Positions 10,573-43,615 of a stretch of DNA of 64,000 nt are shown in pieces. Each line of letters starts with the position of its first letter. Positions within the stretch are counted from its first letter, which is position 1. Position numbers and translations under genes: made by a program. Source of the stretch: Geosiphon pyriformis uo1 (lineage: Eukaryota; Fungi; Glomeromycota); assembly GCA_016748015.1 (NCBI GenBank), contig JAAOMT010000514.1, positions 290,487 to 354,486 on the forward strand, written 5' to 3'. A model generated the notes under the pieces. That model was given only the letters and a program-made list of their open reading frames with translations, was not told where the DNA came from and ran no database searches.

Positions 10573-11331
10573 TGTTATGGGTTGGAGTAACAAGCTAACG
10601 GATAGCAAGAGAGAACAGGATTGTAGGATGATGGAAATAATCAAAGGGGAATTCAATTTTAAAGAGTGAATTAAATGAGTATAGATTCAATATGTGAGAT
10701 CAGTCTCATAAAATATTTCAGTCGCTATTCTTTTCAAAGGTAACTGGCGAATTTGAAAATAGAGGGATAGTCCATACTGTCAACAAATAATCACACTTGG
10801 TATAATTCTATGCCTTATATTGGCACTCTTAGAATTCAATATCAAGTATCAGATGTGCTCTTCAGTCACGTTTTATTCAATAATCTTCAAATACTTTATT
10901 TAATTATTTCAGAAAAAGACAGATAAACACTAACAAGAGATCTTTTATCCAAAAAATATTCAGATACTTGAAGGTAGGGAAAGAAAAATTAATGATAAGA
11001 GAATGTTTAAGATGAAAGTTGTTTTATTATATTTCTTTGATTGTTGGGAACATACTTTTCTACAGCTAAGAGACTCATTATTTATATAGCTATGAAAAGT
11101 AGTCAACAACTAGGTCAATAATCAAGTTAATGATCAGGTCAATGATCAGATCAATGATCAAGTCAACAGTCAGGTTATTGATCAGGTCAACGGTCAGGTT
11201 ATTGATCAGGTCAATGATTAGGTTATTGATTAGGTCAATAATTACTATCTAAAAATAGATTGGTTAATTATATGACATCAGTGGCTAATACATGTGATAA
11301 CTAATAAAAACTATGAGTTTCAACCGTAACA
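10573..11331 (-). mobile_element. Gypsy-B solo LTR
   Basis: TGTTA...TAACA termini, 4-bp TSD ATAT on both sides, internal 12-mer array. Confidence 0.93.
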
Positions 11332-14300
11332 ATATTTTTAGCCACCAGAAAATGTTCATGTACTCTCACAGGCAAAGAAAACTTAGAACATGTAGCATAA
11401 CCAGTAACAGCATCAGCCTCCACATTACCTGTGACCCTAGAATAACTCTTGACATTTACCTACCTCATGACAAGATTTTTATCTCTAACTAAATTAAAAA
11501 TGTGATGCCTTTTTATCCAACATAGAACACAAAAGTCAGACACAGCCAAAGACATTTCAGAAACACATGCATTAATGACAGCCTGACTGTCAAGATGCAA
11601 AACCACTGTACAAGAGGATGAGATACATTCTAATGCCAGAGTGACTGTCTGCAACTTAGATAAAGTAGAAGACAATAGACTTCAAACCTTAACACCAACA
11701 CTAAGATTTACAGAAGGAAAATATGCAACCATGCTGTCAACAACATCAGCAGTCCCAGCCTCTCTTAACAAACCATTTGTGTATATGTCAAACAAACCAG
11801 CCCATATTTCATGCAAACCACTTTGAATATCAGAAAACTCTATGGAATTCAAAATATCTAGCTCAGATAGAAGACTGGTCCTAGCAGGGACAATCAATAA
11901 AGACTTCATATTCATCAAAAACTTCATAACAGCCACAAACCAGAAAAAAACAGGGCCTTTCAGATCTAATCTCTTCCAATGATAAAATGTTTTCCAATCC
12001 ATTATGTGACTCTTTTTATCAAACAGTCTATTACCAAAAGTGACACCAAAATGTTTCAATGAATGGACCGAGCCAAAGTAAAGAGCATCTCCTAACACAG
12101 AAGATATAAAAAACACACCAGAACTGCGAAAAGCACTCGGCAAATTGTTAACTAAAGACAGCTCATTATTCAAGAAAATCTTAATTACACCAGCCAGAAA
12201 ATTGTCCACAGGGCTAACACGTAACTTAACAAGGAACTACAAAAAGTTTAGTGGAGCCTAACTTAGAACCTGCAAATCCAAAAATCTATGATTGAATAAA
12301 TGCCTGAGAATACCAGAAGCATTGGAAAACAAAACCACAGCAGCTGATTTACACTCTGACTGCAACTGCACAAAAGACTTCAAGCCATATAATGAGAGAT
12401 GATGTAATGCTTCGACCAGAAAATCACATGGTAGATGTGCTTTAGATCTAAGACTCTTTTAAATCATAGCATTCCACTTGCAGCAAACTCCTGATAAAAC
12501 AAAACTAAACTGGATCCTATGACTAACAATGGACTGTAGAACAGCTGAGACCAAATAAAAAAACTACTTGTCAGTAATAACTTTCTTTAGCACCACATTG
12601 ACAAAAAAGTGCACATTAGAATGAGCTTTGGCCACACTCAATTTAGACAACCCTTCAGTAGACAAAAAAATACCCAAGTATCTATGAGCCTCACCCTTTC
12701 TAAATATTAAAATTGGCTGACCACTTATGCTCAAAGAAGCCACCTCAACACCCTGATTAATAGGAATGACCACAGTCTTTCATTGTTGATAGAAATGTTA
12801 TTAATTGTAAAAAACTCACTAGCAATATTCAGAATATACTGCATTAATGCTTGACAATTACCAACCCAAATTGTATTATCCACAAATGCACCTGCAGCAA
12901 AAAAGGAGGATAACCTGTCACTAGTCTCAATTCTACCAGTTTTTTCTATAAACTTAATGTCAATTTAATAACCACACAAATGTTTATGCCTCTTGACTTT
13001 GCATAAAAGGGGATCATAGAAAATTCTCCAGAGAAGAGGCAAAAAAACCTCACTTTGATATAAGCCATCATAAACCCTATATCCATCAGTAAGACTGAAA
13101 TCAGTCATAATTCTATTAACCTTATTACTATGTATGCCACCAAAGAATCTAATAAACCTATCACACATTTTGATCCATTGTAAGCTAGCCTCCAAGTAAT
13201 ACCAACTCACAGAATCATAGGCCTTGTACATATTCTGAAGAACCAACCAAAGTTCATAATCTTTTTTAAGAACATCTTTGACAACTAAACCAACCACAAA
13301 TACAGGAAATTGAGTAGATGTTTCCTTCAAAATAGAAAAGTTATTACCATGAAGAACACCAAACTTGCTGCATACAGAAGAGATTCTATTAGAAAAAATC
13401 TTGAAGAGAATCTTCCTGGCAGTCTTGATCAAAGCTATAGGCTGTGTATTCGTAAGAACTCTATCCCAATCATAAGGTTTAGGAATCATTAAGACCCAAG
13501 TCCTTCTTCATAAAACAGAAACACTACTGACCAGCAAACATGTATTCAACAACCTTAAAAGATATCCCAACATTTCATTACCACCATGCTTCCAAAGTTT
13601 ATTAGGAATGCCGGACAAGCCAGCAGCTTTACCATTGGACAAACTATTGACAACCAAGAGCAACTCACTCAAACTAACAACACTTATTACACCAAAAAAG
13701 GCACAATTCTGTATATAATTCAATGAAGCATATTAACAAGCCCAAAGGTCAGGCACCACCAAAGGCACTGCCTATTTCCTAGTCCAACTCTCCATGATCT
13801 TATCAACATTAAGCTTCACTTCCTCAGGTTCCAAAATTAATTTATCATCTACCACTAAGTGATCCAGAACTACTTTGCAAAAAGGCCGATTCAAAATACT
13901 TCTGATCATGATATCTTTGTCAGAGCAAAAATTTTCCATGCATTTTGAAATTGCCAATCTAATAGAAGCCTCCTCAGCCAATTTTGACTTACACATCTTA
14001 GATCTTCTGTATTCTTTACAAACCAATAACAAATGTCTCAGAACTACTTCAAACTTCTCACCCAAGCCAACCAAGTCAGTAAAAGCATGAGCCTTGATGC
14101 TATCCAATGTCGACCATGTTCTCACAAAACAATCAACTCCAAACAAGTCACTCGAACTAAACTTTTTAACAATTTTGGCAATCAACAATTCCAAACCAAA
14201 GAACTTAGAAGAAAGTTTATTCCTAAAACAATGAAATTTACTAAACCAATATCTCAAAAATATCTTATCAGCTGACTCCATTATTACTCTCTCCAAAACT

Positions 14301-16356
14301 GCCCATATAGTCTCCATATTACTATGAGTTTCAGCACCAAGAAATTTATCAGCACCTGCCAAAAGTTTGGCAAAAAGACAATCCTTAAATCCAGTCTACT
14401 TGGGGCCATTAGCATTTTTGATTTTGAACTTCCAATGATCCTTGTTAGCCTGTTTGTGCAAACTATTTAACCAAACATCTAGAAGTCTACCCAAGCCAAT
14501 TAAAACCAAAACAGCATTATGATCAGTATCAAAAAAACCAGACACAGAGCAAATCTGATGACCAGTGACGACAAAAAAAAAATTACCACTGACAAAAATA
14601 AAATTGATCATCTTTTCAACTCCTCATGAATTGCTCCATGTGAAGACTTTTACTATATAATAATTGGTAAATAAATTGACCAAACTCAGATCCAAACAGA
14701 ACTTGAACATTGCACTCTTTCTAGACCTATTTTCATTAAAATCTCCATTTGCAATCACAGAGTTCACCTCCAAAGCTTAATCAAATCTGGTCTCAAAAGA
14801 GGCACCAGCATACAAATCCAGAACCATAACTGAAAGCTTGCCTTTAAACAAAAGCTGAACTGAAATAACTCAGCCAAGAACCTCTTTAATCTTAGACACA
14901 TGGCAAGCCAATGAATTGTTCATAATCACAGCAACTCCAGTACCAAGAAAACTTTTATTCAAGTCAGACATGAAAACACACACACCCTCAAACTTATTAG
15001 CAATTCAAGACTTGCTACTGGACCTCAATTTTGTTTCCATAATGATAGATATCATGTTTTCAGACTCTTTGTGCCAATGAACAACATCTTCTTGTTTAGT
15101 AGAGATATTGAGACCTCAAACATTACATGTAGCAAACTTCTACACAAACTTTGTTATTGAGAAGAGAGAACAGCAAAAACCAAACCAGCATTGTCAATTT
15201 TGGCTGAGAGGCCCATAACTGTGATTGAAAAATTGTTCAGAGTTTTTTCTATTTTAGAGATAACTGATGAATTAAAAACCACCACTCTTGCAATAGTCTC
15301 ACCACCAGTGGCCACACCTGAACTCTCACTTATCACTATATCTGCCCCTTGATTCTGTGATGAAGGGGTCACCAATGGCTGATGTTCAGAGCTAAGCTGG
15401 TGTTACCAGAGGTTTTTGGTCTCTTCTTAGCTCTTGTAAGTTTGTTGTAATGCTGTTAATTCACGATTATGAGAAGTGTTTGAACCTCCGATAACTAAAT
15501 TTATCTTCAAATTATCTCCTATAATTTGAACTGCTGGGCTTATAAGTGGAATGGCCAATTCTGTGCCAATTACTTTATATAGTTATGTTGTAGTAAATGT
15601 CAACTCTTTCCCAAGAATTGTTTATCTGAAAGCTCACTAAAAATGTGTAGTTACTTTGCTGTGAAAGTTAACTCTTCTATAGAAATTCTTGTCTGTAGAC
15701 TACCCAAATGATTTATAATAAAAAAAAGAAAGAGAATAAAAGAAATGTAAAAGAAAAAGTAAAACTGATAATTTATGGAAGTCATTTTGGATCCAGGCCT
15801 GGAAGTGCTTTAACAGTCTACTGAAATTAATAGCTAATCAATTTCAAACTGTTTAGTAGGAATTGGTTAATTTCAAGGGAAATAATTTAAGAATTTGGCT
15901 TTTCAAATTTATTTGATATTTATTTTGTTTTTGTGTATAAAAGATGATTCTAATTATTAAATCTGAAATAAGATATATTTTCTTGAAGAGAGAAGCTCTT
16001 CTTTTATACAACTTGTCGTAACACTATTCTATGAATTTGAACTTTGCTCTTTTCTACAATTTTGCTAAACTAAAGATACATTTTGGCAAACTACAAGTTA
16101 TTTCTGCAAACTATTAGATATTTTGGTGAACTATCAATTATTTCGGTGAATTTCTACAAATTTTGGCAAACTTTTAAATGTTATATATTTTGGGGTATTA
16201 CATGATTGATCATCGCACTTAGGTTACATTTGTGTTATGTACAAATTGAATTATTAATTAAATGATAATTTTGGATATTTTGTTAATGTAATAAGTAATA
16301 ATTTGAAACAATAATATATGCTAATTAATGATAAGATTTATAAGGGTAATTTCATG

Positions 16357-24000: not shown

Positions 24001-27000
24001 CTTGAAAGTAAGTGACAAGTGTTTCACTGTTAAGGTCTTCAGTTTCCAACTGTGAATAGTGTACTAAATTATTGTAAAGATTGTTTCTAACTTCTGAGAT
24101 ATTGTAATTTCCAAAAAGATAATTGTTGATGTGGTTTTCAATGTATTGGTATACTGATTTCTTGACAACTTCAATTCTGTCTGGAATGTTGAATCTTTGC
24201 TTGCAGTGGGTGTAAATTGATTGGTAATACTCTAGAGTTGTTGCGTCTGGTGTGGTCGCCACTTTAAAGTTGTTTTGCTGTATTGTTTCTATGGAAGAAC
24301 ACCAAATGTTACCAGAGGTTTTTGGTCTCTTCTTAGCTCTTGTAAGTTTGTTGTAATGCTGTTAATTTATGATTATGGGAAGTGTTTAAACCTCCAATAA
24401 CTAAATTTATCTTCAAATTATCTTCTATAATTTGAACTGCTGGGCTTATAAGTGGAATGGCCAATTCCATGCCAGTTATTTTGTATAGTTACATTGTAGT
24501 AAATGTCAACTCTTTTCCAGGAATTGTTTGTTTGGAAGCTCACTAAAAATGTGTAGTTATTTTGCTGTGAAAGTCAACTCTTCTATAGAAATTCTCGTCT
24601 GTAGGCTACTCAAATGATTTATAATAAGAAAAGAAAGAAAATAAAAGAAATGTAAAAGAAAAAGTAAAACTGATGATTTATAGAAATCGTTTTGGATTCA
24701 GGCCTGGAAGTGCTTTAACAGTCTACTAAAATTGGTAGCTAATCAATTTCAAACTTTTTAGTAGGAATTGGTTAATTTCAAGAGAAATAATTTAAGAATT
24801 TGGCTTTTCAAATTTATTTGATATTTATTTTGTTTTTGTGTGTAAAGGATGATTCTAATTATTAAATCTGAAGTAAGATACATTTTCTTGAAAAGAGAAG
24901 CTCTTTTTTTATACAACTTGTTGTAACACTATTCTATGAACTTGAACTTTGCTCTTTTCTACAATTTCGCTGAACTAAAGATATATTTTGGCAAACTACA
25001 AGTTATTTCTGCAAACTATTAGATATTTTAGTGAACTATCAATTATTTCAGCAAATTTCTACAAATTTTGGCAAACTTTTGAATGTTACATATTTTGGGG
25101 TATTGCATAATTGATCATCACACTTAGGTTACATTTGTGTTATGTACAAATTGGGTTATTAATTAAATGATAATTTCGGACATTTTGCTAATGTAATAAG
25201 TAATAATTTGAAACAATAATATATGCTAATTAATGATAAGATTTATAAGAGTAATTTCATGTTAAACAATATCTCTAATTTTGTCTGGTAACACTAGGAA
25301 ACCATTGGCCCAAGTGAGTCTAACCTTTTAGCCAACTTGTCAATATGTTCTATAAGGCTGGTAAGACTATACTCAAGAGCGGCAAACCTATTATTCAATT
25401 CTATAGACACCATTAGAGTAGGTCTCATCTCCAAAGAGAAACTAGAAGAAGCTGAGCCATTGCATACAGAAAGAGAAGAGAATGAAGACCTACCAACAAT
25501 ATTAGTCCATAAGACACTACCAAAAGAAATAGGATGGAAGATTGGAGCAGAACATCTAGCATAAATAAAAGCCAGTTTGCTTTTATCATCATTCGACAAT
25601 ATCTTGCGAATTGGTCCACCAGGAGAAATCTTCTCATCCACAAAACAATTCAGAGATGTGTGACTCAAACTCTCACACTTAGCATACTTAACAGAATCCA
25701 GGTAAGACCAATGCAAATTGGCACTCTTTAAGACTGTGTAGTTTTTATAATAGCATTAATTGAAGCTACAGAGTCAAAACAAACAACAGTACATTTGGTC
25801 CAGGCATATGTAATAGGGTGTTAATTGATAACATATGTTTTCTCATCCACAGAACCAATAAAGTCTCAGATATCATGAGCATTTGTGCTTATTGGTAGTG
25901 TATAAAGCAAAGCCTTATGCTAATCCCTTGTATTTCATAATTTCTTGTCTATATTAACCTTGGCCACTCTTATGGCATTTTTTTTGATCAAGATAGACCA
26001 TCTAGCTGTGACCAAATCAGTCTGATTTGATTGGGCAAATTTAACCACAGCCTTTTGTTATAGCTTTATTAATTGCATCTTGATTGACACAACAGAACCA
26101 AATTCAAAAAACGCAGCACACACAGCCTCAGCTGATGTTCCAACTGGAATTTTCTTCACCACCACAGCCTGATCTGAATGACCAGTTTATTTCTTGAGAT
26201 TAGTGTTTACCAAAATGTTTGTTGCTCTTGCCTTTTCTGTAGCCTGTACCAAACTAGCTTTAGAAGTGAAGAAAGCATGAATAATCTTAGAAAATTTTGA
26301 GAGAGCAAAGGCCCTCCCAAAACCATTGACTTTTGAAAACAATTTTCTGACCATTATCAGCTTTTCTTAAGAGAATTTTCTAACCACTTTATCCAAGCCA
26401 ATATTCAAAGCAAAAGATTTCCTAACAGAAACAATAACCAAATTCTTCAAGGAAGGGAGAAGTTTTAAGAGGATATCCAAGAAAATATCATCATCATTAT
26501 TATGACTTGAGAAATCTATTTTCTCTAATGGCTTGCCCAATGCTTTTTTAGTTTTGATACCTGGTTCTTTAGACATTTGATCATGATTCCCATTTGCAAT
26601 AGTGCCATTCACACCATAGTCAAAACTAGTTTCTTCTACTAGACATTCTTTCTCCATATCAATACTTTCAGACTTGGTAATGTCATCAGTCTCAGAACCC
26701 CATAAACAACCACCTGGCACCATAGTTAGCATTCCTTTGCCACCAACACCTTCTTTCAAAGCGACACCTTTTCTCTTCTTTCTTGACAAAACAGGCTTGA
26801 AACCTCTACCAGAACCAGATTCTTTAGTGACTTTCTTCATAATAGCAATATTAGGGCCAACAGTAGCCTCAAAATTGAAAAATGGTTTGGTTTTATCATA
26901 CTGAATGTTGAAAAAAACTTCTTTCAAATAAACTTTGACTCTTTTTTGGGAATTTGGGATAAATAAAAGAAAGAAGTTTTTTTTATTATATTTGTATAAA

Positions 27001-27148
27001 CCTAATTTTAAAATTACATTATTTTATTATTATTATTTTTTAAAAGTGTTGTTTTTATATTTTTATAATTAAAAACTTTATTTTAATTAATTATTAAAAT
27101 AATATTATATAATTAGTCATTTTTTTTAAATAATAATATAATTTAATT

Positions 27149-27330
27149 ATTATTTAATACAATATGACAATAAATATTTTAAATTAAATATAATTTATAT
27201 TTTTTTTTATTAAATGTTTAACAAGTGAAGCCCAACTGCTATTTAATACATAAAACCAAACTAAGTGATTCAAACTAAATATAGCTTATGCTTTTACTAC
27301 ATATAGCCAGCCATTTAAATTTATATAATT
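27149..27330 (-). repeat. Decayed copies of the LINE-A-type 3' tail
   Basis: aagtgaagcccaactgctatttaatac (~27222) matches 9625. attatttaatacaatatgac (~27149) matches 27691. Confidence 0.7.
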
Positions 27331-27653
27331 ACTATATATAATTAATTATTTAAACCAATTAAAATTATATTATATATTTACAATAACTAAAACTGTATTT
27401 AAACTTAAAAAGCAGATATTTTTTTCTAAAATCAAAATTAATTATATGTTTTTTAATAATATTTAATAAATAATTAATTTTTTTAAATAATTAATTTATA
27501 TTTTTAAAAAATTTTTAAAACTTTAAAAAATCAATTTTTAAAAACAAATTATATATATATATATATATAATTAAGTGTTTTTAATATAATTAAACAAAGT
27601 TTAAAGCATTTAAAACAATATAATATTAACTTAAATTAATTTTTTAATATATA

Positions 27654-28997
27654 TTTTTTTTTATTAAAATTTAATAAGTAAGGTTCAACTACTATCTAAT
27701 ACAATATGACCATATAGAGTCTTAAATTAAATGTGGCTTACATATTTTCTACATATAACCAGCTACTCAAGCCAGTTCAAACTATACTACATTAATGCAC
27801 TAAAAGAAAATTTATCCAAAAATGACATTTTTTGAATAATAAGAAACAAAGTCGCACTGCAAGGAACCAATCCAACCAGCCATTTAGCTGTTTTCAAGGC
27901 ATCAGTCTTAATATCAATAGTCTTATGTTCTCAAAGAAACATCAAGTTAGAAAACACTTCATCATCCAAACCAACTGGATGCTTTGAATTATCAGACATA
28001 TCAATATCCTCTATATAGTACTTTTTTTTTAAAGAAACCACTTCTTTTCCCAACTTACCAACAACTTTACTAAAAGAATCTAAATGTATAATAATCTTAT
28101 TAACCCTAAGGCCAAGTTTACTGCTTGAGACCAAATTCTCATTAATAAATTGTTTGAACAATTTGACCAAGAAACCAACTGGTTTAACAATAGACTCAAT
28201 TAAAACAAAAAACTTAACCAAATTAGATTCTACAGAAGCCAATCGAGAAGACACTATAGGATTACCAACAATCATAGAAGGAGAAGTAGGAGCTGTCAGG
28301 AGAGGAAACTCAGAAGAATTCAAGAAAGCTAAAGCTTTTACATAAGAAACACCACCCACAAATTGTGTTTTAAACATCTTGGAAGCCTTGAGAAAGGAAA
28401 ATGGAGAAACTTTGCAGTTTACAACCAAATGATTCACTTCTTGACACCTAAGCAGTGCTAACAACCAGAAGTTTCCCACAAAATATGACATTTTTTTAAG
28501 ATACCCATTTTGACAACTGCAGAGTTCAAATCAACTTGAGAATCAAATGTAACCAGAGCAAACTAAAAATGACAACCAGAATCAGACAAATAAGGAATGA
28601 AACAAGTCTGGCCACCAACTTAGAAGATCATATCACTAATCTTAAAGGCAGTACAGCCAAAAGAAAGATTGACCAACTTGGTCTTAAACTGATCATAAAA
28701 CAAAATTGTCTTATTTTAATTGATAAGAAGAAGAATATGAACACTATTTTTGTCTACCAAAATTGACTAGTAAGTAAGAACAAAGGCAGCAGCATCCAAT
28801 TCTTTAAAATAAACAACCACATATTGCCAAACACCAGCAGGCTTTAGCATGACATAAAAACTAACTTAATATTAGCAGCAGATACACCCAAAGACACATC
28901 ACACAATGCAACAACAACAAAAAAAGAACCAGACTCAGAAACCACCAAAGATTTGGTAATTTTAAAAGTGACAAAATGAACAAAGCTTGTAAGCTCA
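27654..28997 (-). mobile_element. Older ORF1-only (HAL1-like) element, 3' part, with LINE-A-type tail
   Basis: ORF1 CCHC, SY(V)KA motif and coiled coil, reading through a TGG>TGA stop to ...TAKW...KMSFLDKF...ALM* (stop at 27787-27789). Immediately followed by a tail homologous to LINE-A 9603-9736 and by poly(A). Confidence 0.8.
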
Positions 28998-30942
28998 ACT
29001 AGAAACACAACATACATTTCTTAACTAACACATCCATAGCAGTTAGAGTAGACAGCAATTTAGTAACTAATACAACCAAAGCACCAACAGGCTTAATCAA
29101 GGACTTTATCAACATAGATAGTTCACTAAGGTGGGATTCCAGAGAAGTCAACCTAGATTTAACAGCAAAATTGAAAGCAAAAAAAACAGCAGGCAACATG
29201 GGTGTTGCAGTTTTGAAGAGACTACCAAGATTTAAGTTCATATTAGCAGCAGCAACAACAGGAGGAACCAAAAAGGCAGCAGCTTTGGCATAAGATTTAG
29301 ATCTAGTAAATAAAAATTTGAAAACTTTGGAGCCACCAAAAGTATTGAAAAAGAATTTGGGTGGGAGAAAAGGTAATATCTTGCAGTTCACAGCCAAATA
29401 ATTCAAGTCTTGACATCTGTAGCAGTGGTAACATCCAAGAGTTTTTTACCAGATGTGGCAACCACACAAAGTATTAGTCTTTGACACAGCAACATTCAGA
29501 AATTTTAAAGAATCAAAAATAATTACAGCAAAGCATTAATGTCAGTAAAATTTGGAGGAATAAAGAATGAAACATATACAGCCACCAACTTGGGAGACCA
29601 AATTACTTATCTTAAAGACAGTACAGCCAAAAGAAAGATTAACCAACTTAGCTTTAAAGGTATCTCTTGAAGAAATAACATTATTTTGGTTGATAACAGA
29701 AAGAATCCTAATATTGTCTTTCCTAATCAGCACAGACCAATGAATAAAGACAGTAGTGGCAAAAAAAATGTCTTTAAAATGAACCACAGCATATTGCCAT
29801 AAACCAGTAGGCTTTAACTTAACAAAAGTAACAACACCAAAAATGCCAAGAGCAATTTTAATGTCATCAAAAAAAGTGCTCAAAGGCATATCATGAAGTA
29901 CAACTGACAAAAAAGGAGAAAAAACAGAGATTATACTAGAAGACTGTACAATCTTAAGAGTGGTCAGAAAAACTTCATCACTAATGACCACTTTGGTGGT
30001 ATCATTTAGACTTTTTTGAGATGCAAATTTCACACAAAACAACTTAACAGCATTTTTTGAAACAGATTTAAGCCCAATACAACCAGACAGCAATTAAAAC
30101 AAAGAACTAAGCAGGGCCATCTTAATATTAAATATAGCACCAGATACTAAATTAAAGACCACCCAACCAGAGTATCTTTAATGATCATTCATATTCTTCC
30201 AAGCACCACCATCAACAGCACCAGAAAATGAAGGAGAAGCAGTTGATTCTATTTCTATCTGATCAGTCCAATCTTTAAGATCATCTAAAATGATAGACTG
30301 TTTTGCTTCTGAGATTGGTAATGATCTGCTGGAGATCACCACATTAGGCAACACAGCCAGTGGTTAATCTTAGCCCATCTTGGAAGATATGCCACTGTTG
30401 TTGCCATCCATATCAGAAAGAGGGCTGGCTGCTGCTGTAAAGATCTTACCCAAGATTTCATCTGAAACCACAAAGAAATTAGGTGTGACCATAGCAGTTG
30501 CAACTGTCTGCTGCTGTTTTTTGGAATTTTTTGCTTTCACAATTATTTGTGAAGCAGTAGTAGTAGTAGTAGTAGTAGTAGTGGAAGTAGTGAGAGCAAG
30601 AAAGACCAACTTGCTGACTGGTCTGTTATTAAAAATCTTTGGGCTTTTTGAAGTGGTAAAAACAACACTGAGACTAATCCAAATGTGCCTTTTTGAAGAA
30701 ACTTTGACTGGAAAAGAACTTCCAGCCAAAAAAGAAGAAAATGAACCAGAAACTGCTAAAGACAGCTTTTTACTAATATTTTTTAAAGGAAATGTTGTCA
30801 GAATGTTTTACTTAGCTACTTTAATAACAAAAAAACCCTTTCATGTTAAAACTTTATTAGTTACTATAGAAAAAGTACTGTTTGCAACTTTTTTACTCTT
30901 AGCTCTAATCGTGGTCATAAAAATTAGAAGAGAAAAAGTTTG
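28998..30942 (-). mobile_element. ORF1-only element copy, 3'-truncated
   Basis: Colinear with the copies at 43616-46007 and 57552-59988 from the 5' end up to MDVLVKKC. Confidence 0.85.
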
Positions 30943-30944
30943 TA

Positions 30945-31006
30945 TCACTAAGTGGTTATGTCTAACTACATGCTAATATAACCAGAAACTCTATAGAGTA
31001 TTACAC
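30945..31006 (-). mobile_element. Short fragment of LINE-B ORF2 end / 3' UTR
   Basis: Reverse complement matches 41562-41625 (tttctggttatactagcatgtagttagg). Confidence 0.7.
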
Positions 31007-34000
31007 TGTTATGGGTTGGAGTAATAAGCTAATGGATAGCAAGGAAGAACAGAATTGTAGGGTGATAAAAGGAATCAAAAGAAATTCAACTTCAAAGAGT
31101 GAATTGAATAAGCATGAATTCAATGTGTAAAATCAGTTTCATAAAATATTTCAGTTGCTATACTTTTCAAAAGATAACCAGAAATCTGAAGGTAGAAAGA
31201 TAGTTTGTACTGTCAACAAATAATCATGCCTGATATAATTCTATGTCTTACATTAGTACTCTTAGAATTCAATATCAGGTATCAAATGTATTCTTCAATC
31301 ATGTTTTATTTCAATAATCTTCAAATGCTATAATTACATGTTTTAGGAAAAGGGTAAATAAAGGTCAACAAATATCTTTTATTCCAAAATGTTCAGATAT
31401 TTAAAAGTAGGAAAAAAGAAATTAGTAATAAGAGAAAAATTGAGATAAAATTGTTATTTTATTTCTTTTATTTCTTTAATTTTTATATGCTTTTCTATAG
31501 CTAAGAAATTTATTACTTATATAGCTATCAAAAATAGTCAATAATCAGGTCAACAACTAGGTCAATGATCAGGTCAATGGTCAGGTCAATGATCAGATCA
31601 ATGGTCAAGTCAATAATCAGGTCATTAATCAGATCAATGATCAAGTCAATAGTTAGGTCATTGATCAGGTCAATAATTACTTTCTAAAAATAAAGTGGCT
31701 AATTTATGTGATATCAGTGGCTAATACATGTGATAATTAATAAAAAGTATAAATTTCAACTGTAACATTATTCTCTCTAAAGAGATTAAGCTCTGGCAAA
31801 ATCAAGCTATTCATGATATAATCTATTTAAAGAGTTTTATTTAACTCAAAGCTAATTAATTTGTTGAAGTCTTTTATGGATAGAATATATAATACTTGAG
31901 GTGAAATAAGTTTTGTATCTAAGAAACCAAATCTTTGTATTAGAGTTTTGGCTTTTTTAGCAATAATTAAAACTCTTGAGATATCTAACCGTATAATGCC
32001 CAAAATTTCTGCCTGTATCTCTGAAGTTGTTTTCTTCATGAGTTTCATATCTTCTATGATTTCTTCAAGGCAACTATAGAGTTCTAATTGCCTTCCATAT
32101 GATAAGTTTTTGTCTATAGGTAAGATTTCTTGGAGTGTTTTTCCAATTGTGCTAAAAGGTAGGAGTATAGCTGCTGTTATACTTTCCAACAGATATTTAT
32201 CCATTTTGCTACCAATTTTTTCTCTTCTGGTAGTAGTTTTCTTTGATCTAATAACAGTATGTATTCCACTGTTATCAGTTATGGTGGTTTGTTTTTCAAT
32301 GGTTAGAGTAGCATTTGGATAATTTTTGATCCAATACTCATGGAGAGTATAAAAGACATTTTAAATGTTTTGATCCAAAAAATAATTGTTTATGTCAATT
32401 AAAGATACTGTTATGGGTTGAAGTAACAAGTTAATAGATAGCAAAGGAAAACAAAATTGTAAGATGATGAAAAAAATCAAAAAAAATTCAATTTTAAAGA
32501 GTGAATTAAATAAGTATGAGATTTAATGTGTGAGATCAGTTTTATAAAACATCTCAGTTGCTATACTTTTCAAAAGATAACCAGGGAATCTGAAGGTAAA
32601 AGAATAGTCCATACTGTTAACAAATAATCACACATTGGTATAACTCTATGCCTCACATCAGAGCTCTTAGAATTTAATATTAGATATTAGATATACTCTT
32701 CAGTTATGTTTTATTCAATAATCTTCAAATGCTCCAATTACACATTTCAGAAAAAGGGTAAGAAATAACCAACAAGTAATCTTTTATCCTAAAATGTTCA
32801 GATACTTAAAAGTAGAGAAAGAGAAATTAGCAATAAGAAAAGGATTGAGATAAAAGTTGTTATTTTATTTTATTTTTTTCTTTGATTCTTACATGTATTT
32901 CTACAGCTAAAAAATTCATCATTTATATAGCTGTCAAAAGTGGTCAATGATCAAGTCAACAACTAGGTTAATGATCAGGTCAATGATCAGATCAATGGTT
33001 AGGTCATTGGTCAGGTCAATAATCACTTTCTAAAAATAAAGTGGCTAATTTATGTGACATCAATGGTTAATACATGTGATAATTAATAAAAAGTATAAGT
33101 TTCAACTGTAACAATACCTCTGTTTTGGGAATGGTACATTAATTTATACTTGATTTTTGCTGATTATTTGAGTCAGTATTATTACAACAGGCAACCAATC
33201 AGGTCATTTATAATATTTTTTAAGTTATGTACCATGAACAGAACAATCATTGAAGATTGTTCCAAATTAATCTTGAAGAATATAAAAACCATTGTTCAAA
33301 ACTTTGTTGACTATAAAGGATCCTTTCCACTAACTAGAGAATTTATTACCATAAATATTGTCTCTGTTTGATCAGTATTCTAATACCAAGTCACCAACAC
33401 TTAAAGAAAGTGTTTTATAGGTTTTTTTTCTTAAGCTTTTTTTAGAACTGTTTTATTTTTTCAAAAGCAATTATTCATGCTTCTACCAAGGAGTCAAGAA
33501 TGGTACCAAGTCTTTTTTGCAAAATGTTTTTGTAATTTTCTATTGTGATCTCTTTAAAAGATATTGTTTTAATGTCAGTTTCTATTGGTAATGTTGCCAT
33601 GCATCCATAGAGCAGATAAAAAGGTTCATAATTTGTTATGTCATGATTTACAGTTCTATAAGCAAACAAAGCTGAAGGCAGTACTTTGTTCCATAAGTTT
33701 GTTTCTTCACTGGTTTTGGCTAGAGTTTTACATAGTGTTCTATTAAAATGTTCCACTAGGCTATTTGTTTGGAGGTGATAAGAAGAGAAAAATTTATGAT
33801 GTATTCCCATTTTTCTACAAAGTTTTTCAACCAGTGTACTGAAAAAAGTTCTTCTTCTATTAGATAAAAGTTCTTTGGAACAGCCATAATGACAGATGAT
33901 ATCTTCATAAATGAAATTGGCTATTAAGACTGCTGTTTGGTCTGGGGTGGCTTTTGCTTCTATCCACTTTGTAAGATAGTTAGTAGCTATAATAATGTAT

Positions 34001-37000: not shown

Positions 37001-40000
37001 TGGTTCATTGTTATCAGCAGTTGATGTGAAAACTTTCTTTGAATCTAGAATGAAATCAATCTTGGCTTTCTTCTTCTTTCTTGTTGATTCAGAGATGTTG
37101 ATTGCTAATTCATCCATGTTATGGTCATTATCAGTTAGGTTAAAAACATAAAAAGGGTTTTTTTCTGGTTGGCTTGTACTCTCACTCTTTGGAGATGCAC
37201 CTATCAGTTTAAAGGCTGATAAACAGTGGCTTCAACCAGGGGATTCTCTCCAAAGAAATTGATGTTAGCATAATTGGGTCTTTGATTGGGGACATTGTTG
37301 TTGATGGTTCTGTTGTTTTAATTGTCATTGTTTTTAGGAGCTGGAGGAGGCAGGGGAGAATTGTTACAATTTCTGGAAAAATATCCAGTTAATCCACAGC
37401 AGTAACACACAGGTGGGCCACGATTTTGTTGTCTTTGATATGGGAATTGCTGGGGTTGATTAAAATGGAGTTCAAATCTGGGTTTTTGGGGTTGTTGATT
37501 CTCTCTAACAGCTTGGGCTAAGGGTTTCAGTAATTGAGCAAGATTAGCTATGAGTCTATTTATTAACTGTTCATTTGGGTCTTGAGTTTGGGCAGCAAAA
37601 GAGACAGCAGCCATTTGTGGAGCTAGAGCCATGACAGGAGCAGAAGCAAAAACTGGAAGTGTAGATCCCAAATGCATTCTTTGGTTATCTTCAATTCTTT
37701 ATGCCAGTTCAATAGCCATGTCCATTGTTGGGTTGTTTTTTAAAGCCAAGAGAGGCCAAAGAGCATACAATAGATCAGTTCTTAATCTTTTTGTGAAGGA
37801 ATGGATCTTTTATTTTTCTGTTCAGTTTCTTCCAGAGTCTACACGTTTGATTAGCTTTCTGATAGCTTTGGCATATTCAGTTACTACTTCTCCAGGGCCT
37901 TGGGTTCTTTTTTCTAATTCCATGTGCCATTTGGATATTAATATTGCAGTTTTGAACTTGGCCTCAAACTGGGTAGTGAAAGAGGTATTTTCTTCTCCAG
38001 CATTGGTTGGTTTCCATCTGATTATTTTGTTGTTACGAATTGAAGTAACAAGCTAATGGATAGCAAGGGAGAACAGGATTGTAGAGTGATGGAAATAATC
38101 AAAGGAGATTCAACTTCAATAAGCAAATTGAATGAGTATGAATTCAATGTGCAAGATCAGTCTCATAAAATATCTCAGTTGCTATTTTTTTTAAAAGGTA
38201 ACAAGGGAATTTGAAGGTAGAGGAATAGTCCATACTGTCAACAATTGATCACCACTGGTATAATTCTATGCCTCATGTTGGCACTCTTAGAATTTAATAT
38301 CAGGTATCAACTTGTGCTTTTCAGTCACATTTATTCAAATAATCTTCAAATGCTACAATTATATATGTCAGGAAAAGACCAACAAGTAATCTTTTATCCT
38401 AAGATGTTTGGATACTTGAAGGTAGGGAAAGGGAAATTAGCAATAAGAGAGTGATTGAGATGAAAGTTGTTATTTTTATTTATTTGATTTTTGTCTGAGA
38501 GATGATTTTCTACAGCTAAGAGACTCATCACTTATATAGCTAATGAAAGTGGTCAATGACCAGGTCAACGACTAGGTTAATGATCAGGTCAATGATCAGG
38601 TCAACAGTCAGGTCATTGATCAGGTCAATGATCACTATCTAAAAATAGAGTGGCTAATTATATGACATCAGTGACTAATACATGTGATAACTAATAAAAA
38701 TTATGGATTTCAACCATAATACTGTGTTGAGCATTGGCATCTGTTTCTTGTAAGAACCAGGTAGCAGAAGAGCCTTGGAGATAGCCACCAATAATTTAGA
38801 ACTTGTATTCTTCATTATACTGGTTGGCTGTGACAGCTCTCTTAAAATCATCTAACCATTTAATTGGATCTTGTACATCACTTCTAAATAGTGGTAGTGG
38901 GGTATTGTTTCTTCTTCCTAGAGCAGTTTGTATATCTTGGAGGGTGGCCAGAATGTTTGCTTTCATGGGGTCATTAGCCATTGGTTCAGGGGTAACTGTT
39001 TGTGCAGATGAATCTGATTTGCTTGATAAAAGGTCAAAAACAGAGGCAGTTTGGTAGCTTTCTTCTTCTGTTTCAAAGAGAGTTTCAGTTGCTTGATGGA
39101 CAGCAATCCAAATGTGGATTTGATGATTCAAATATTCGAAATCAGGGGGCTGTTGTTCAAAGATTGCAGAATATAAGAGCTGATTGATACTGTTGTTTCT
39201 TTCTTCAAAATCATCTTTAAAATAAGCTTGGTCAAAGTAATAGTGTTATGAGTTGGAGTAACAAGCTAACGGATAGCAAGGGAGAACAGTATTGTATGGT
39301 GATGGAAATAAACAAAGAGGGAATTACAATAAGGGAGCAAATTGAATAAGTAGGATTTCAATGTGCATGATCAGTCTCATAAAAATTACAGTCGCTAATC
39401 TTTTCTTAAATCTAAAGGTAGAGGAATAGTCTGTGATTGTCAACAAGATAACACCGCTGCTATTATTCTATGCCTCAACTCAGCAATTCTTAGAATCAAT
39501 AACAAGTATTGTTGTACTTTTCAATTGTTTCTTTATTCAATGAATTACAAGAGCAAGCCAATTACTTCTCAGGCTAATTCTAACAAATACAAATCAAGAA
39601 GGGGAAAAGATAAGGTATGTGAATGCCAACAAGTAGATATTTGAAGGTAAGGAAAGGGGAATAAGTGATTATGAGAGGAAGTAATTAATATTGTTTATTT
39701 TGTTACTTTGATCATGTCTTTCTACAGCTAAGGGAATCATTGCTTATATAGCTATCTAAAGTGGTCAACGACCAGGTCAATGATCAGGTCAATGATCAGG
39801 TCAACGGTCAGGTCATTAATTAGGTCAACGATCACTATCTAAAAATAGGATGGCTAATTATATGACATTATTGGCTAATACATGTGATAATTAATAAAAA
39901 CTATGTGTTTCAACCATAACAATAGGTTGTATAAGTTGTGTAGGTTTCAGCTGAATGCTTATTCAGGAACCAGTTCCAAAAGTCTTGGAATTGTCTGCTG

Positions 40001-40846
40001 GATTGTTCTTCAATGGGAAAGCAAATCAAGCAGGAAGACAAAGGATTAAGTTCAATAAAGTCTAGATCATTTTTGTTGTGTGCTTCAAAGTGTTCTTCTA
40101 ATTGTTGTGGCAGGTATAAATAATCATCCATACAATAGGAAACAAAGTGGATTTTGACAACCTTACAGGGAGCACCACTTTTATGTTATGAGTTGAAGTA
40201 ACAAACTAATGGATAGCAAGGGAGAACAGGATTGTAGAGTGATAGAAATAATCAAAGAGAATTCAACTTCAAAGAGCAAATTGAATAAGTATGGATTCAA
40301 TGTGTGAGATCAGTCTCATAAAATATCTTAGTCGCTATTTTTTTCAAAAGGTAACTGGAATCTGAAAATAGAGAGATAGTCTGTACTGTCAACAAATGAT
40401 CATGCTTGCTATAATTCTATGCCTCACATTGGCACTCTTAGAATTCAATATCAAGTATCAGATGTGCTCTTCAGTCATGTTTTATTCAATAATCTTCAAA
40501 TGCTACACTTATACATTTCAGAGAAAAGGGTAAGAAAATACCAACAAGTAATCTTTTATCCCAAGATGTTCAGATACTTGAAGGTAGGGAAAGGAAAATT
40601 AGCAATAAGAGAATGATTGAGATGAAAGTTGTTATTTTATTTATTCTTGATTATTTTGAACATACTTTTCTACAGCTAAGAGATTCATTGCTTATATAGC
40701 TGTCAAAAGTGGTCAATGATCAGGTCAACAACTAGGTCAATGATCAGATCAATGATCATTTTCTAAAAATAGAGTGGCTAATTTATATGACATCAGTGGC
40801 TAATACATGTAATAATTAATAAGAAGTATAAGTTTCAACTGTAACA
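31007..40846 (-). mobile_element. Gypsy-B copy 1: complete domain set, with three nested solo LTRs
   Basis: 3' LTR 31007-31767 and 5' LTR 40184-40846. PBS TGGTGCTCCCTGT, gag with CCHC, protease (LILNSGS), RT (YLDD, 34985-35716), RNase H, integrase. Nested LTRs at 32409-33113 (TSD ATAC), 38031-38721 (TTGT/CTGT) and 39244-39921 (ATAG). Confidence 0.92.
31827..32204 (-). CDS. Extra ORF between integrase and 3' LTR of Gypsy-B (unknown function)
   Basis: Uninterrupted 125-aa ATG-initiated sense ORF ending just before the PPT. Confidence 0.55.
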   Translation of the reverse strand: MDKYLLESITAAILLPFSTIGKTLQEILPIDKNLSYGRQLELYSCLEEIIEDMKLMKKTTSEIQAEILGIIRLDISRVLIIAKKAKTLIQRFGFLDTKLISPQVLYILSIKDFNKLISFELNKTL

Positions 40847-41740
40847 ATATAGACTAGATGTGCACAACTAAGATTTGGAACTGGGATGGTAAAATGTCAT
40901 TAGGCTTCACCTTAGCTGGTTCTTCAGCAATGTGCACATTTATTATGAAATCATTTTACAATATGCTGCCAACAGCAGAGGTGCTATACAACAGACATCC
41001 CTTTGTATACCTGAATAATCTTTGCAAAATATGTCACAGGGAAGTGGAAACCAACTGGCACTTTTGGGAATGCTCTCTGAATACCCAAGAGGGCAAGACA
41101 CTAATTAATGATATAAGAGATATGTGGATATGGTGCCTTTCAGAGGCTGTGAAAAGGAGATGTGAAGCCCTAAACACTGATGAGAAGATTGTACTGTCTA
41201 ATAAATATAAATCTGCTATGTAAAGGATTGATCAATAAGCAATTTGGAAGAATCAATGCTTTTGCTAATATAGACCTAAGGACTAACAATAATATATTAA
41301 TTAAGGTGTGTAAATGGGCAATTACTCAAGCAAGGAATAGATTGTGGAGAGGATGTTGTAAATTGCAAACTGAATGGGAAAAATCAATGTGTATTGATAA
41401 CAGGATCAAGAGAAATCTATCTAATGGCTCCAACATACATAGTACTTCAAAGAATAGTGATAGGGATACTGGCAAACCCATAGTTAAAATAGGTGATGTA
41501 TTCACACAGTATAATAATATACTGACTAATGTTTTTTATGATAGGAGTACTTTGTGTAATAGTGTAATACCCCATAGATTTTCTGGTTATACTAGCATGT
41601 AGTTAGGCATAACTACTTAGTGGTTAGCCATATCTTGTAATATAGATTATTGGGTGAGTTGGCTTTATGAAAAAGTCATGCTTTTTGAGTGTGGCTAAAC
41701 TAATAAAAGACCAGCATGGCTACACATTAACAAAAAAAAA
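40847..41740 (+). mobile_element. LINE-B: 3' end of ORF2 (zinc finger), 3' UTR and poly(A)
   Basis: MLPTAEVL...LCKICHREVETNWHFWEC zinc finger, RNRLW motif, ends YTSM* at 41602, tail ...ggctacacattaac(A)n. Confidence 0.88.
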
Positions 41741-43615
41741 CAGTAGTTGACACAGAAGCATAAGTTCCACCTTTCTTGGATACCACTACAACTGGGAAAG
41801 CCCATTCACTCTTGGTTTTTTGTATGAATCCAAGATCTTTCATCCAGTTTAAGGCTTTAAATAGATGAGATGAGTTTCTTATGTGGTGATGGTGTGTTGT
41901 ATCACATGGGTTTGTCCAGGAGTATCACTTTCTTTTGAGATAACTGGGCTATTTCTAGTCAATAGATTTTCAATGTCCACTTTTCTTTCTTCAGAGAAAG
42001 GTTCTTTTTGTTTTATAACTAGTGATTGGATTTCAGGTGGTTTATTTTCAAAGGACTTCTGTACTTCTTTTAGTTCTTTTCTGGGTATCAAACTAATTGG
42101 CTCCCAATCTTTGTAATAGATTAGGCAGGACTTGCATTCATCACTAGGGAAATACAAAGATTTATTGCACTAGCACCTGGCACAAAAACCATGCCATCAA
42201 TAACTGTATTTTGCTTTCTTGCCAGGTTTTCTATCAAAAGTTCTTTTGAAGATATCATAGTAGGGCCAGCAGATTAGCTTGCCATTTACCAGAATTTCTT
42301 TTTTGTCAGCTTTAACATTTTCCAGTGGCTTGCCATTGCTTATGAAGATAGTATAGGTGAGTTCAGTAGTTTCTTCTTGTTCTTTTTGATCTTCTTTTTT
42401 ATTGCTCTCATCATCATCTGATTCATCTGATTGTTTTTTTTTTGGTTCTGCTTGGATACTGGAGGAGTTGTCCAATAATGGCACTTAACCACAATGGGTT
42501 TCTCACCACATCTAATGATTAGTTCACAGAGTTCATAATTAAGTAAGACTTTTTGCTTTCTTGAGCTATTCATTGCTAACTATTATGGTGTATTCTTTTG
42601 CTTCAGATACTTCTATGTCATTTTCAATGCTGATATCATTGATTCAGACAGGAACAGCTTTGGATTAATAGATAAAAATGGATACAATTGTACGGGATGT
42701 TCAGACATTAGTTATTAGTCTTGTAGATGGTTCATTAATCTTTCTGCCAATTGCTTCTAAGAAGTATTTGGCAATGACACTTATAGATGATCTACTGTCC
42801 AGGATCAGATCAATGAAATAACCAGCCACTTGGGCTTTACAAATGAGAGGGGTAACATTGCTGTTGTCAGCAAGTCTAGCTTGGCATGGGCATTTGTTGG
42901 TCTTTAGTGTCTTTTTCTTGAGAATCAAAGATTTGCAAAGGTCTTTTCTGAATTGGGGACAACAGAATAGGGTCCAGATTTTTGTATAATTTCTGGGGGT
43001 TCCAACTTTGGAGGATTTTTAAAAACTTTAGCCTTTGGTGGCTCATTGTTATCAACAGTTGATTTGGATGCCTTGTTTGGATCTATAATGAAATCAACCT
43101 TGGCTTTTTTCTTCTTTCTTGTTGATTCAGAAGTGTTGATTGCTAGTTCATCTATGTTATGGTTATCATCAGTTAGGTTAAGAGCATAAAAGGAGTTTTC
43201 TTCTGGTTGGCTTGCACTCTCATCCTTTGGAGGTGCATCTACCAGTTTAAAGGCTAATAAACAGTGGCTTCAACTAAGAAATCCTCTCCAAAGAAATTGA
43301 TGTTGGCATGATTGGGTCTTTGATTGGGGATATTGTTGTTGATGGTTCTGTTGTTTTGATTGTTATTGTTTCTGGGGGCTGGAGGAAGCAGGGGAGGATT
43401 GTTGCAATCTCTGGAGAAATGTCCAGTTAAGCCACAGTGATAACACACAGGTGGGCCACGATTTTGTTGTCTTTGATAAGGGGGTTGCTGGGGTTGATTA
43501 AAATGGGGTTCAAATCTGGGTCTTTGGGATTGTTGATTCTCTCTGACTGCTTGGGCTAAGGGTTCCAGTAACCAGGCAAGATTAGCTGTGAGTCTATCTA
43601 TTAACTGTTCATTTG

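Follow-up and report, generated by a model that had tools for sequence, protein, structure and literature searches.

How can members of one family of ORF1-only retroelements carry the 3' tails of two different LINEs? The question is raised by a 64,000-nt stretch of the Geosiphon pyriformis genome (the window below), which is AT-rich (GC 23 to 42%) and densely packed with nested retroelements. An old element in this window ends in a tail resembling that of one LINE, LINE-A, and younger copies encoding a protein of the same family end in a tail resembling that of another, LINE-B. ORF1-only derivatives of LINEs are usually viewed as short-lived deletion products of a parent, as for HAL1, and tail exchange is known from non-coding SINEs. 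The original prediction saw here instead a long-lived lineage of protein-coding LINE parasites that acquires or tracks the 3' modules of different LINEs.

The old element and its family

The old element lies on the reverse strand and spans 27624-29016, so that the extent first given to it, 27654-28491, was too short (Table 1). It is a decayed copy of an A-tailed ORF1-only element, truncated on its 5' side at position ~886 of a ~2270-nt unit, of which it covers positions ~886 to 2300, and it is 83% identical over 1417 nt to the full-length copy L002. Translation of 27640-28491 (-) reproduces exactly the peptide that had been quoted for it. The open stretch of 186 aa closes with the letters ...LMFL, directly followed by a TGA that is TGG (W) in better-preserved copies; past this codon, the old element reads EHKTIDIKTDALKTAKWLVGLVPCSATLFLIIQKMSFLDKFSFSALM, then TAG at 27787-27789. 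On its other side, it abuts a 3'-truncated copy of a B-related subfamily. That this composite, with its junction at 29011/29016, is a single template-switched insertion was considered and found unsupported, as no TSD flanks it.

Table 1. Features of the window, numbered from its first nucleotide
Feature	Position	Strand	Evidence or remark
LINE-A, autonomous type, 5'-truncated: ORF1 end, APE, RT, C-terminal zinc finger	9563-15400	-	tail 9563-9741
Unrelated repeat, inserted in LINE-A	10565-11339		repeat families D1-D20
5' part of another LINE-A-type element (outer coordinates approximate)	24300-27000	-	ORF1 pieces 26367-26927 and 25294-25716
Second A-class tail fragment, isolated, just downstream of the old element	27135-27319	-	tail alignments
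Old element (5'-truncated, decayed)	27624-29016	-	83% to L002; 78-85% to at least 40 genomic copies
A-class 3' module: stop codon, ~135-nt UTR, A-rich end	27624-27791	-	tail alignments; hairpins
Frame after TGG>TGA: ~50-aa helical 'TAKW' end domain and TAG (27787-27789)	27787-27930	-	intact in L002 and L030; AF2 helices, pLDDT ~80
End of CCHC knuckle, SYxKA motif, coiled coil, acidic linker (186 aa open)	27931-28491	-	aligned to A-, B-, C- and D-type proteins
B-related ORF1-only subfamily, 3'-truncated, abutting the old element	29011-30941	-	80% to young copies
LINE-B 3' end: ORF2 end and tail 41590-41747	40847-41747	+	sequence match
B-tailed copy, full-length	43627-46004	-	sequence match
B-tailed copy, full-length	47505-49927	-	sequence match
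B-tailed copy, 5'-truncated	49935-52006	+	sequence match
B-tailed ORF1-only copy, full-length	55170-57543	+	281-aa open C-terminal part, 56564-57409
B-tailed copy, full-length, head-to-tail after the 55170-57543 copy	57559-59984	+	sequence match

A search of the organism's own genome, a 128-Mb assembly, with 27600-28900 as query brought up the further A-tailed copies that had been called for: at least 40 scored copies (1579 first-look candidates), 78 to 85% identical, with matches running through the tail. Most are full-length at ~2.27 kb, and the scored copies sit on different contigs. The 30 loci that were fetched display a unit of ~2.27 kb with a common 5' end (CTCTTTGTCTCCTTAATTTTATGACC...) and a common 3' end (...TTGGGCCTTGCTTATTAAACTTTAATAAAAAAA). 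TSDs of 10 to 12 bp were found in L004, L015, L017, L019 and others, placed beside the A-rich tail and 12 to 15 nt upstream of the conserved 5' motif. The hallmarks of TPRT are therefore present in the A-tailed family, namely a common 3' end, an A-rich tail, 5' truncations, TSDs and dispersed copies.

The B-tailed family is 2.38 kb long, has the 5' terminus of the A-tailed form, and comprises many full-length copies at 82 to 93% identity (1210 candidates). Over positions 27 to 1513, the A and B forms are 64 to 65% identical at the nucleotide level. B-type copies and LINE-B occur on the same contigs, and head-to-tail arrays of copies are seen. All copies read carry stops or frameshifts, the longest stretch left open in the DNA being 454 aa, and the comparisons reported here were made on individual copies.

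The ORF1-only protein

The unit holds a single ORF of ~650 to 700 aa, which starts ~20 nt from the conserved 5'-terminal motif; behind it come a 3' UTR of ~150 nt with predicted structure and an A-rich tail. Its layout, pieced together from several copies and the annotated 653-aa model P0073, is in order a basic and serine-rich N-terminal region, RRM-like domains, a CCHC knuckle, a SYAKA motif, a long coiled coil, an acidic linker and an end domain. The 653-aa model may bypass frame defects via introns. Neither endonuclease nor reverse transcriptase was found in the 2.27-kb unit by reading its ORF and by Pfam, where only RRM_1 matched, at 24.1 to 27.1 bits in P0066, P0067 and P0156 (the Pfam cut-off being 20.7) and at 19.9 bits, under that cut-off, in the window copy. 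The CCHC motif was read directly (CFRCQKMGHLAVDC in L030). We take this succession of RRM fold(s) and CCHC knuckle to be the architecture of a type II LINE ORF1p.

The last 281 aa of the protein, taken from a B-tailed copy, gave nothing above threshold in Pfam. For the last 168 aa of the A type, AlphaFold predicts two long helices, a disordered acidic linker and an end bundle of ~50 aa made of three to four short helices (pLDDT ~80, in a model with an overall pLDDT of 67 and a pTM of 0.33), and a Foldseek search with this model returned generic helical hairpins only, none at E <= 0.001. A profile of the C-terminal region matched 123 proteins among 1.84 billion representatives, and the ten looked up were all from G. 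pyriformis.

Five young copies carry the MMHLWEDQ...TAKWM...ELDMF quoted initially (...MMHLWEDQPLRIKSSPDQTAKWMSGMVKNSHELVSIMGKMYELDMFDTLGSKGSTSV). The claim that the old element is colinear without gaps with this C-terminus holds, as the gapless alignment reaches a BLOSUM62 local score of 63, against 19.9 +/- 4.0 for shuffled sequences, and none of 2000 shuffles scored as high. The entire region after the knuckle is collinear between the old and young forms, and the end domain is collinear across the A, B, C and D types of the protein. Divergence between the A and B types is uneven: the N-terminal two thirds are 50 to 59% identical in amino acids (64 to 69% in nucleotides), with a dN of 0.31 to 0.41 and a dS of 0.83 to 1.45, and the C-terminal third is 33 to 35% identical, with a dN of about 0.8. 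The difference between dN and dS indicates that the N-terminal two thirds were under purifying selection in the past, although the neutral decay of the copies inflates dN.

Attempts to trace the C-terminal part to LINE-A did not succeed. On a resemblance judged by eye, the end domain was considered as an in-frame remnant of the C-terminus of LINE-A ORF2, and this was rejected (pairwise z at most 2.1, hhalign probability 0.3%); homology of the end domain or coiled coil with the N-terminus of LINE-A ORF1 was likewise rejected (hhalign probability 4%), the sole match lying in a chimeric gene model, within its ORF1-only portion.

Two classes of 3' tails

In the window, the tail of the old element matches LINE-A (9563-9741, 70% over 185 nt, E 2e-14 within the window) rather than LINE-B, as had been noticed at the outset, and the young tail matches LINE-B (41590-41747, 75%, E 5e-20). 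Overall, the tails of ORF1-only elements are 70 to 82% identical to those of their partner LINEs, and in a multiple alignment, the tails fall into two clearly separate groups, A and B. What similarity remains between the groups consists of TGTAGT at the stop and GGCT.CAC..TTAA.AAAA at the end. There are thus two classes of 3' module, and each shares homology with the 3' end of its own LINE, the two LINEs being very distant from one another.

The homology with the partner switches on, in both pairs, within the last ~5 to 15 codons before a shared stop. For the B pair (four LINE-B 3' ends and six B-type copies), identity rises from 35-50% to 75-95% ~17 nt before the common TAG, and persists at this level for ~150 nt, to the A-rich tail. 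In the A pair, homology sets in at the stop or slightly ahead of it, the stops align (..TGTAG, then TAT..), and the shared coding stretch is short, if any. Annotated ORF2 proteins of the LINE-A type end ...LFFSGLDFSSHVIIDM, so that the TAG of the LINE-A in the window is the ORF2 stop, reading through one internal stop. The coincidence of the ORF1 stop with the ORF2 stop of the partner, which the original prediction reported for both pairs, is thereby borne out, on the LINE-A side from one genomic 3' end and the annotated ORF2 C-termini.

In the predicted RNA folds of B tails, the first eight bases (UGUAGUUA, stop included) pair with UGGCUACA just before the A-rich end, in an 8-bp helix that closes the UTR. 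It is found in the consensus fold and in the MFE structure of every copy folded, and is invariant, hence without covariation; the z-score of the tail fold is -3.05 for LINE-B, and -0.6 and -1.9 for ORF1-only copies. Such a predicted closing helix would account for an exchanged module that begins at the stop codon. The predicted folds of A tails have two hairpins, CAUGUA...UGCAUG and a longer one, which LINE-A and the ORF1-only copies retain although their bases differ: the outer stem is AUCUAGU/ACUAGAU in the former and AUCUAAU/AUUAGAU in the latter, and the inner stem GGCCA/UGGCC and AAGAC/GUCUU, respectively. The consensus energy of A tails is weak (-6.3 kcal/mol).

The partner LINEs

The ORF1 of LINE-A, read in 18 genomic copies, encodes RRM-like domains, a CCHC knuckle and two coiled coils, and ends ...NAGLV..SSQ before its stop. 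The start of the APE domain overlaps the end of this ORF1, and the end domain of the ORF1-only protein is absent from the 18 copies, as originally claimed. Identity between the two proteins is 27 to 33% in the RRM-knuckle core (27% over 313 aa, E 3e-30). Some LINE-A copies show, upstream of the ORF1 start, a weak likeness to the coiled-coil/LW region of the ORF1-only protein. P0157 and extended HMMER matches pointed to a LINE-A subfamily in which the coiled coil of the ORF1-only protein would be joined to the upstream side of KPFF. This possibility was also rejected: the genome does not contain, as contiguous sequence, the junction that P0157 implies, and the exons of P0119 lie ~2 kb apart, so that we read these models as spliced across neighboring elements.

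The 5' half of LINE-B is known from one DNA copy (L062) and gene models. L062 is longer than the window fragment but lacks the 5' end, and encodes APE, RT, RNase H and a zinc finger, all with matches over the Pfam cut-offs. The ORF1 of LINE-B, for which the presence of the 'TAKW' end domain was to be checked, proved to be a different protein devoid of it, which ends ...SMETDDV before its stop and is barely alignable with either LINE-A ORF1 or the ORF1-only protein. Pfam scores are 46.3 bits for Exo_endo_phos, 38.9 for RVT_1 and 36.3 for RNase_H in LINE-B, and, for the LINE-A type, 26.7 bits for Exo_endo_phos and 37.6 for RNase_H (the latter in P0119). By their domain content, both tail donors are autonomous-type APE-RT-RNaseH LINEs (I/Tad-like). 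They are far apart from each other, with 36% amino acid identity in RT and 26% in APE.

Discordant histories of ORF1 and tail

A maximum likelihood tree built from 20 rows and 306 columns of the ORF1 core places the ORF1-only proteins of types A, B, C and D in one clade (96/94), with B (86/86) and A/C/D (98/98) as separate groups inside it. The LINE-A ORF1s form a separate clade (98/99), and the LINE-B ORF1 stands far off on a long branch. Since the ORF1s thus group as a single ORF1-only clade while the tails align by LINE, the histories of ORF1 and tail disagree, which is the incongruence that the original prediction proposed to look for. By their 5' end, their ORF1 phylogeny and their collinear end domain, the A-, B-, C- and D-type elements are one lineage.

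Exchange inside this lineage is also apparent. Subfamily B2 ends like B, and subfamily D is close to A. Type C has a core inseparable from that of A in the tree, a C-terminal third 22% identical to that of A, and an A-class tail. The lineage is therefore modular and recombines, and it shows as a mosaic whose 3' third has had another history than its 5' two thirds.

How were the two tails acquired?

We think it probable that the old element represents a HAL1/HeT-A-like non-autonomous, protein-coding LINE derivative of G. pyriformis, whose tail has been exchanged at least once. The notion of a long-lived lineage of LINE parasites acquiring or tracking 3' modules is supported by the single ORF1-only clade with its two tail classes. 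Other scenarios deserve consideration. A lone broken ORF1 fragment may have landed beside a LINE-A tail fragment by chance, and the setting invites this idea, the window being made of dense nested repeats and the old copy abutting another truncated element without a TSD. However, the same junction between ORF and tail is found in at least 40 copies, on different contigs and with TSDs, so that the A-tailed form is not the single-copy accident that the original prediction had feared; chance juxtaposition is refuted, and we give it virtually no credit. Alternatively, each form could derive by internal deletion from its own autonomous LINE, a 'LINE-X' endowed with this ORF1 and with an A- or B-class tail, and no exchange would be needed. 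HAL1 arises repeatedly in such a manner (PMC5753468, PMC5786205), and the distant relationship of the ORF1-only core with LINE-A ORF1 (27% over 313 aa, E 3e-30), as well as the weak coiled-coil/LW similarity upstream of the ORF1 start in some LINE-A copies, could be vestiges of this kind. Yet the LINEs bearing the A and B tails have other ORF1s, and the end domain is unrelated to the N-terminus of LINE-A ORF1 or to the C-terminus of its ORF2. Because the LINE-A and LINE-B ORF1s differ from the ORF1-only protein, and have no end domain, independent deletion from LINE-A and LINE-B is excluded, and neither form is a recent internal deletion of the LINE whose tail it bears. In particular, the element is not a simple deletion derivative of LINE-A, as had been argued, given that LINE-A ORF1 is a different protein, in a separate clade. 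Among the 123 profile matches, three of the long ones examined (P0119, P0123 and P0156) and the shorter P0157 and P0036 do carry LINE sequence, apparently spliced across adjacent elements. No autonomous LINE with this ORF1 was found among the copies and library proteins examined, and we hold the existence of such parents to be rather improbable.

The original prediction left partner switching and co-divergence side by side. Under pure co-divergence, the ORF1-only lineage would predate the split between LINE-A and LINE-B, and its tails would have tracked their partners by point mutation, without recombination. The residual similarity of A and B tails at the stop and at the end could date back to such a common origin, and the C-terminal third, with 33 to 35% amino acid identity between A and B, is as diverged as the RT of the partners; for this third alone, old co-divergence is possible. 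In contrast, the N-terminal two thirds of the ORF1-only protein are closer to each other (50 to 59%) than any segment of LINE-A is to LINE-B, and the tails are 70 to 82% identical to those of the partner while the two tail classes have only scattered motifs in common. Moreover, partner homology begins abruptly near the stop, and the A/C mosaics reveal recombination in the lineage. Given an RT identity of 36% between the LINEs, against 50 to 59% for these two thirds, exchange fits better than pure co-divergence, which we regard as very unlikely.

If the tail was indeed exchanged, several steps can be proposed. The ORF1 protein of the element would coat its own RNA, and, by analogy with stringent LINE/SINE pairs, the ORF2 protein of the partner would recognize the 3' module and reverse-transcribe the RNA by TPRT in trans. 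Stringent LINEs recognize tails, and LINE RTs switch templates (PMC5786205). Replacement of the tail, at least once, may have involved template switching by RT, or recombination between co-packaged or tandem copies, and would let the lineage pass from one LINE host to another. That copies lie head to tail in arrays, and that B-type elements and LINE-B occupy the same contigs, is circumstantial but fits a shared integration machinery; such arrays would also supply a substrate for tail exchange. A more daring extension, to which we grant a small chance, is that the whole last third, from the coiled coil through the end domain to the 3' UTR, serves as a 'partner adaptor', a cassette that can be traded. 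In this view, the end domain, which turned up in no autonomous LINE here and, within the libraries searched, in no organism besides G. pyriformis, might dock the RNP onto the ORF2 protein or the tail RNA of a given LINE, and the lineage might survive the loss of individual LINE families by passing the cassette from one sub-lineage to another and taking fresh tails from whichever LINE is active.

Comparison with known elements

Kojima places HAL1 together with HeT-A and Ag-Sponge among the 'ORF1-present bipartite nonautonomous LINEs', which result from internal deletion (PMC5786205). The Geosiphon element resembles them in having an ORF1-type protein without APE or RT and a 3' end common to an autonomous LINE; unlike theirs, its ORF1 and 5' part do not come from the tail donor by internal deletion, as far as the ORF1s of LINE-A and LINE-B tell. 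HAL1 arose several times from the L1 of mammals (PMC5753468), and is likewise multi-copy, non-autonomous, limited to ORF1p and dependent on an autonomous LINE (PMC5753468; PMC5786205), a dependence that we infer for the Geosiphon element. However, HAL1 elements are recent L1 deletions retaining the ORF1 and ends of L1, whereas the Geosiphon ORF1 belongs to neither tail donor, and comes with an extra end domain and with a specific structured tail that differs between sister families. L1 itself recognizes little beyond poly(A).

HeT-A (with TART/TAHRE) and Ag-Sponge are ORF1/Gag-only non-LTR elements that have persisted for long beside RT-encoding relatives, which makes them similar in another respect. 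They differ as insect elements of the Jockey and CR1 clades, HeT-A being specialized for telomeres, and the text consulted does not report that they ever moved from one LINE partner to a distantly related one (PMC5786205).

With regard to tails, the closest parallel is with SINEs. In SINEs that share tails with LINEs (stringent-type LINE partners, CORE- and Ceph-SINEs), the 3' tail is copied from the partner and thought to be recognized by the LINE protein, and SINE tails are occasionally replaced by that of another LINE (PMC5786205). SINEs, however, are short and non-coding, with pol III heads, whereas the 5' end of the Geosiphon element leads directly into a long ORF, in a unit of 2.3 kb whose protein of ~650 to 700 aa was apparently under purifying selection.

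Among fungi, a parallel comes from Blumeria graminis, where the ORF1s of I-type LINEs have multiplied into the EKA family (PMC4641428). The Satine and Kryze LINEs of this fungus belong to the I superfamily, with a CCHC ORF1 and an RT-RNaseH ORF2, and the sequences derived from their ORF1 have likewise proliferated greatly and evolve fast (PMC4641428). EKA sequences, in contrast, are truncated ORF1 copies co-opted as effectors, and are not described as ORF1-plus-tail units with exchangeable tails. A survey of transposable elements in Glomeromycotina makes no mention of ORF1 or of non-autonomous LINEs (PMC11952901). What sets the Geosiphon element apart from these known elements is an ORF1 and 5' end that do not come from the tail donor, a probable SINE-like exchange of tails, and a private end domain. 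If this is confirmed, LINEs would have hyper-parasites that last long, are built of modules and can switch host element, and the two tails, the two LINEs and the one ORF1 would make up a natural system in which to study stringent recognition by RT and the contribution of ORF1p in cis.

Finally, our results bear on genome annotation: copies of the ORF1-only element account for dozens of the 'hypothetical proteins' annotated in G. pyriformis, and some of these models are spliced into neighboring LINEs.

Junctions and genomic clustering of ORF1-only elements and LINEs

In the G. pyriformis genome, the best LINE-B 3' ends share contigs with the best B-type ORF1-only copies (C439, C540, C404, C615, C658, C699, C594, C484, C554, C633, C631, C607, C423 and C490), where they are frequently found no more than a few kb apart, head to tail. 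This co-occurrence suggests that B-type elements and LINE-B have a common clustered target preference.

Within the window, about 57 nt of a LINE-B end (..TTTCTGGTTATATTAGCATGTAGTTAGACATAACCACTTAGTG..) adjoin the 5' terminus of the B-related ORF1-only copy at 29011-30941. The ORF1-only copy seems to have inserted within a LINE-B tail at this site (Table); alternatively, both seem to have been joined there. At its other extremity this copy is 3'-truncated and fused directly, at 29011-29016, to the old A-type copy, which is itself 5'-truncated. The composite formed around this junction is not flanked by a TSD, and the absent 3' portion of the B-related copy is not present downstream of it.

In public annotation, five 'hypothetical proteins' (P0119, P0123, P0156, P0036 and P0157) appear to come from gene models whose splicing runs out of an ORF1-only copy into an adjacent LINE of LINE-A or LINE-B type. 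The locus tags listed with the first four are G9A89_000728, G9A89_012446, G9A89_011169 and G9A89_021364. Dozens of further models are pieces of the ORF1-only element.

Table. Positions of the features discussed (window positions, unless a contig, C, or genomic locus, L, is named)
Feature	Position (strand)	Remark
LINE-B ORF2 end, stop and first part of B tail	30942-31000 (-)	just upstream of 5' end of B-related copy
A-class tail plus about 100 nt of AT-rich sequence 3' of it	27059-27311; 27511-27763	two occurrences
Tail of an A-type copy, LINE-A-like in its middle	L017:1521-1658 (-)	..TTTAGTCCTGAAACTCTTAATTTG..
LINE-A-type copies with upstream extension	C718:1892434-1893384; C667:742853-744133; C658:53009-54112	examples
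Repeat of about 0.7 kb	10565-11339; 30999-31770; 32405-33120; 38023-38729; 39240-40849; 52725-53431	
Separate, younger repeat family	15400-15700 (-)	300 nt immediately upstream of truncated LINE-A
ORF antisense to B-type RRM region	44637-45089 (+); 50495-50947 (-); 58475-58927 (-); 56088-56492 (-); 48629-49009 (+)	

A-class tails and LINE-A copies

The A-class tail occurs twice together with its AT-rich 3' sequence, at 72% identity and a spacing of 452 bp; the DNA between and following the two occurrences is almost pure A/T. In one A-type copy (L017), the mid-tail is closer to the LINE-A version than to that of other ORF1-only copies, and may result from local conversion by a LINE-A tail.

In some LINE-A-type copies of the genome, the protein match reaches 25 to 80 codons further upstream than YDK.KPFF, where ORF1 usually starts, and there shows weak similarity to the coiled-coil/LW region of the ORF1-only protein. 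Probably an LTR or solo LTR, the 0.7-kb repeat is located inside LINE-A and also on the flanks of a Gypsy-type element that lies at about 33.4-37.7 kb. The younger repeat family has many genomic copies, at 92-94% identity.

Codon decay and antisense ORF

At 27928-27930, the LW motif's conserved tryptophan codon, TGG, is replaced by a stop, and the same codon is hit in L012, L015 and L019, the change to TGA or TAG having arisen independently in several of these copies. Differences between copies appear rich in transitions, an uncounted impression from the alignments; such an apparent excess is expected from cytosine deamination.

The ORF antisense to the B-type RRM region (peptide MKHV.SPTWETKSLISKAVQLNRKLTNLALNASLEEITSFWLA...) is found in five copies; in three of them it encodes exactly 150 aa, and in the other two 126-134 aa. 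It could be an artefact of codon composition or a genuine antisense ORF.
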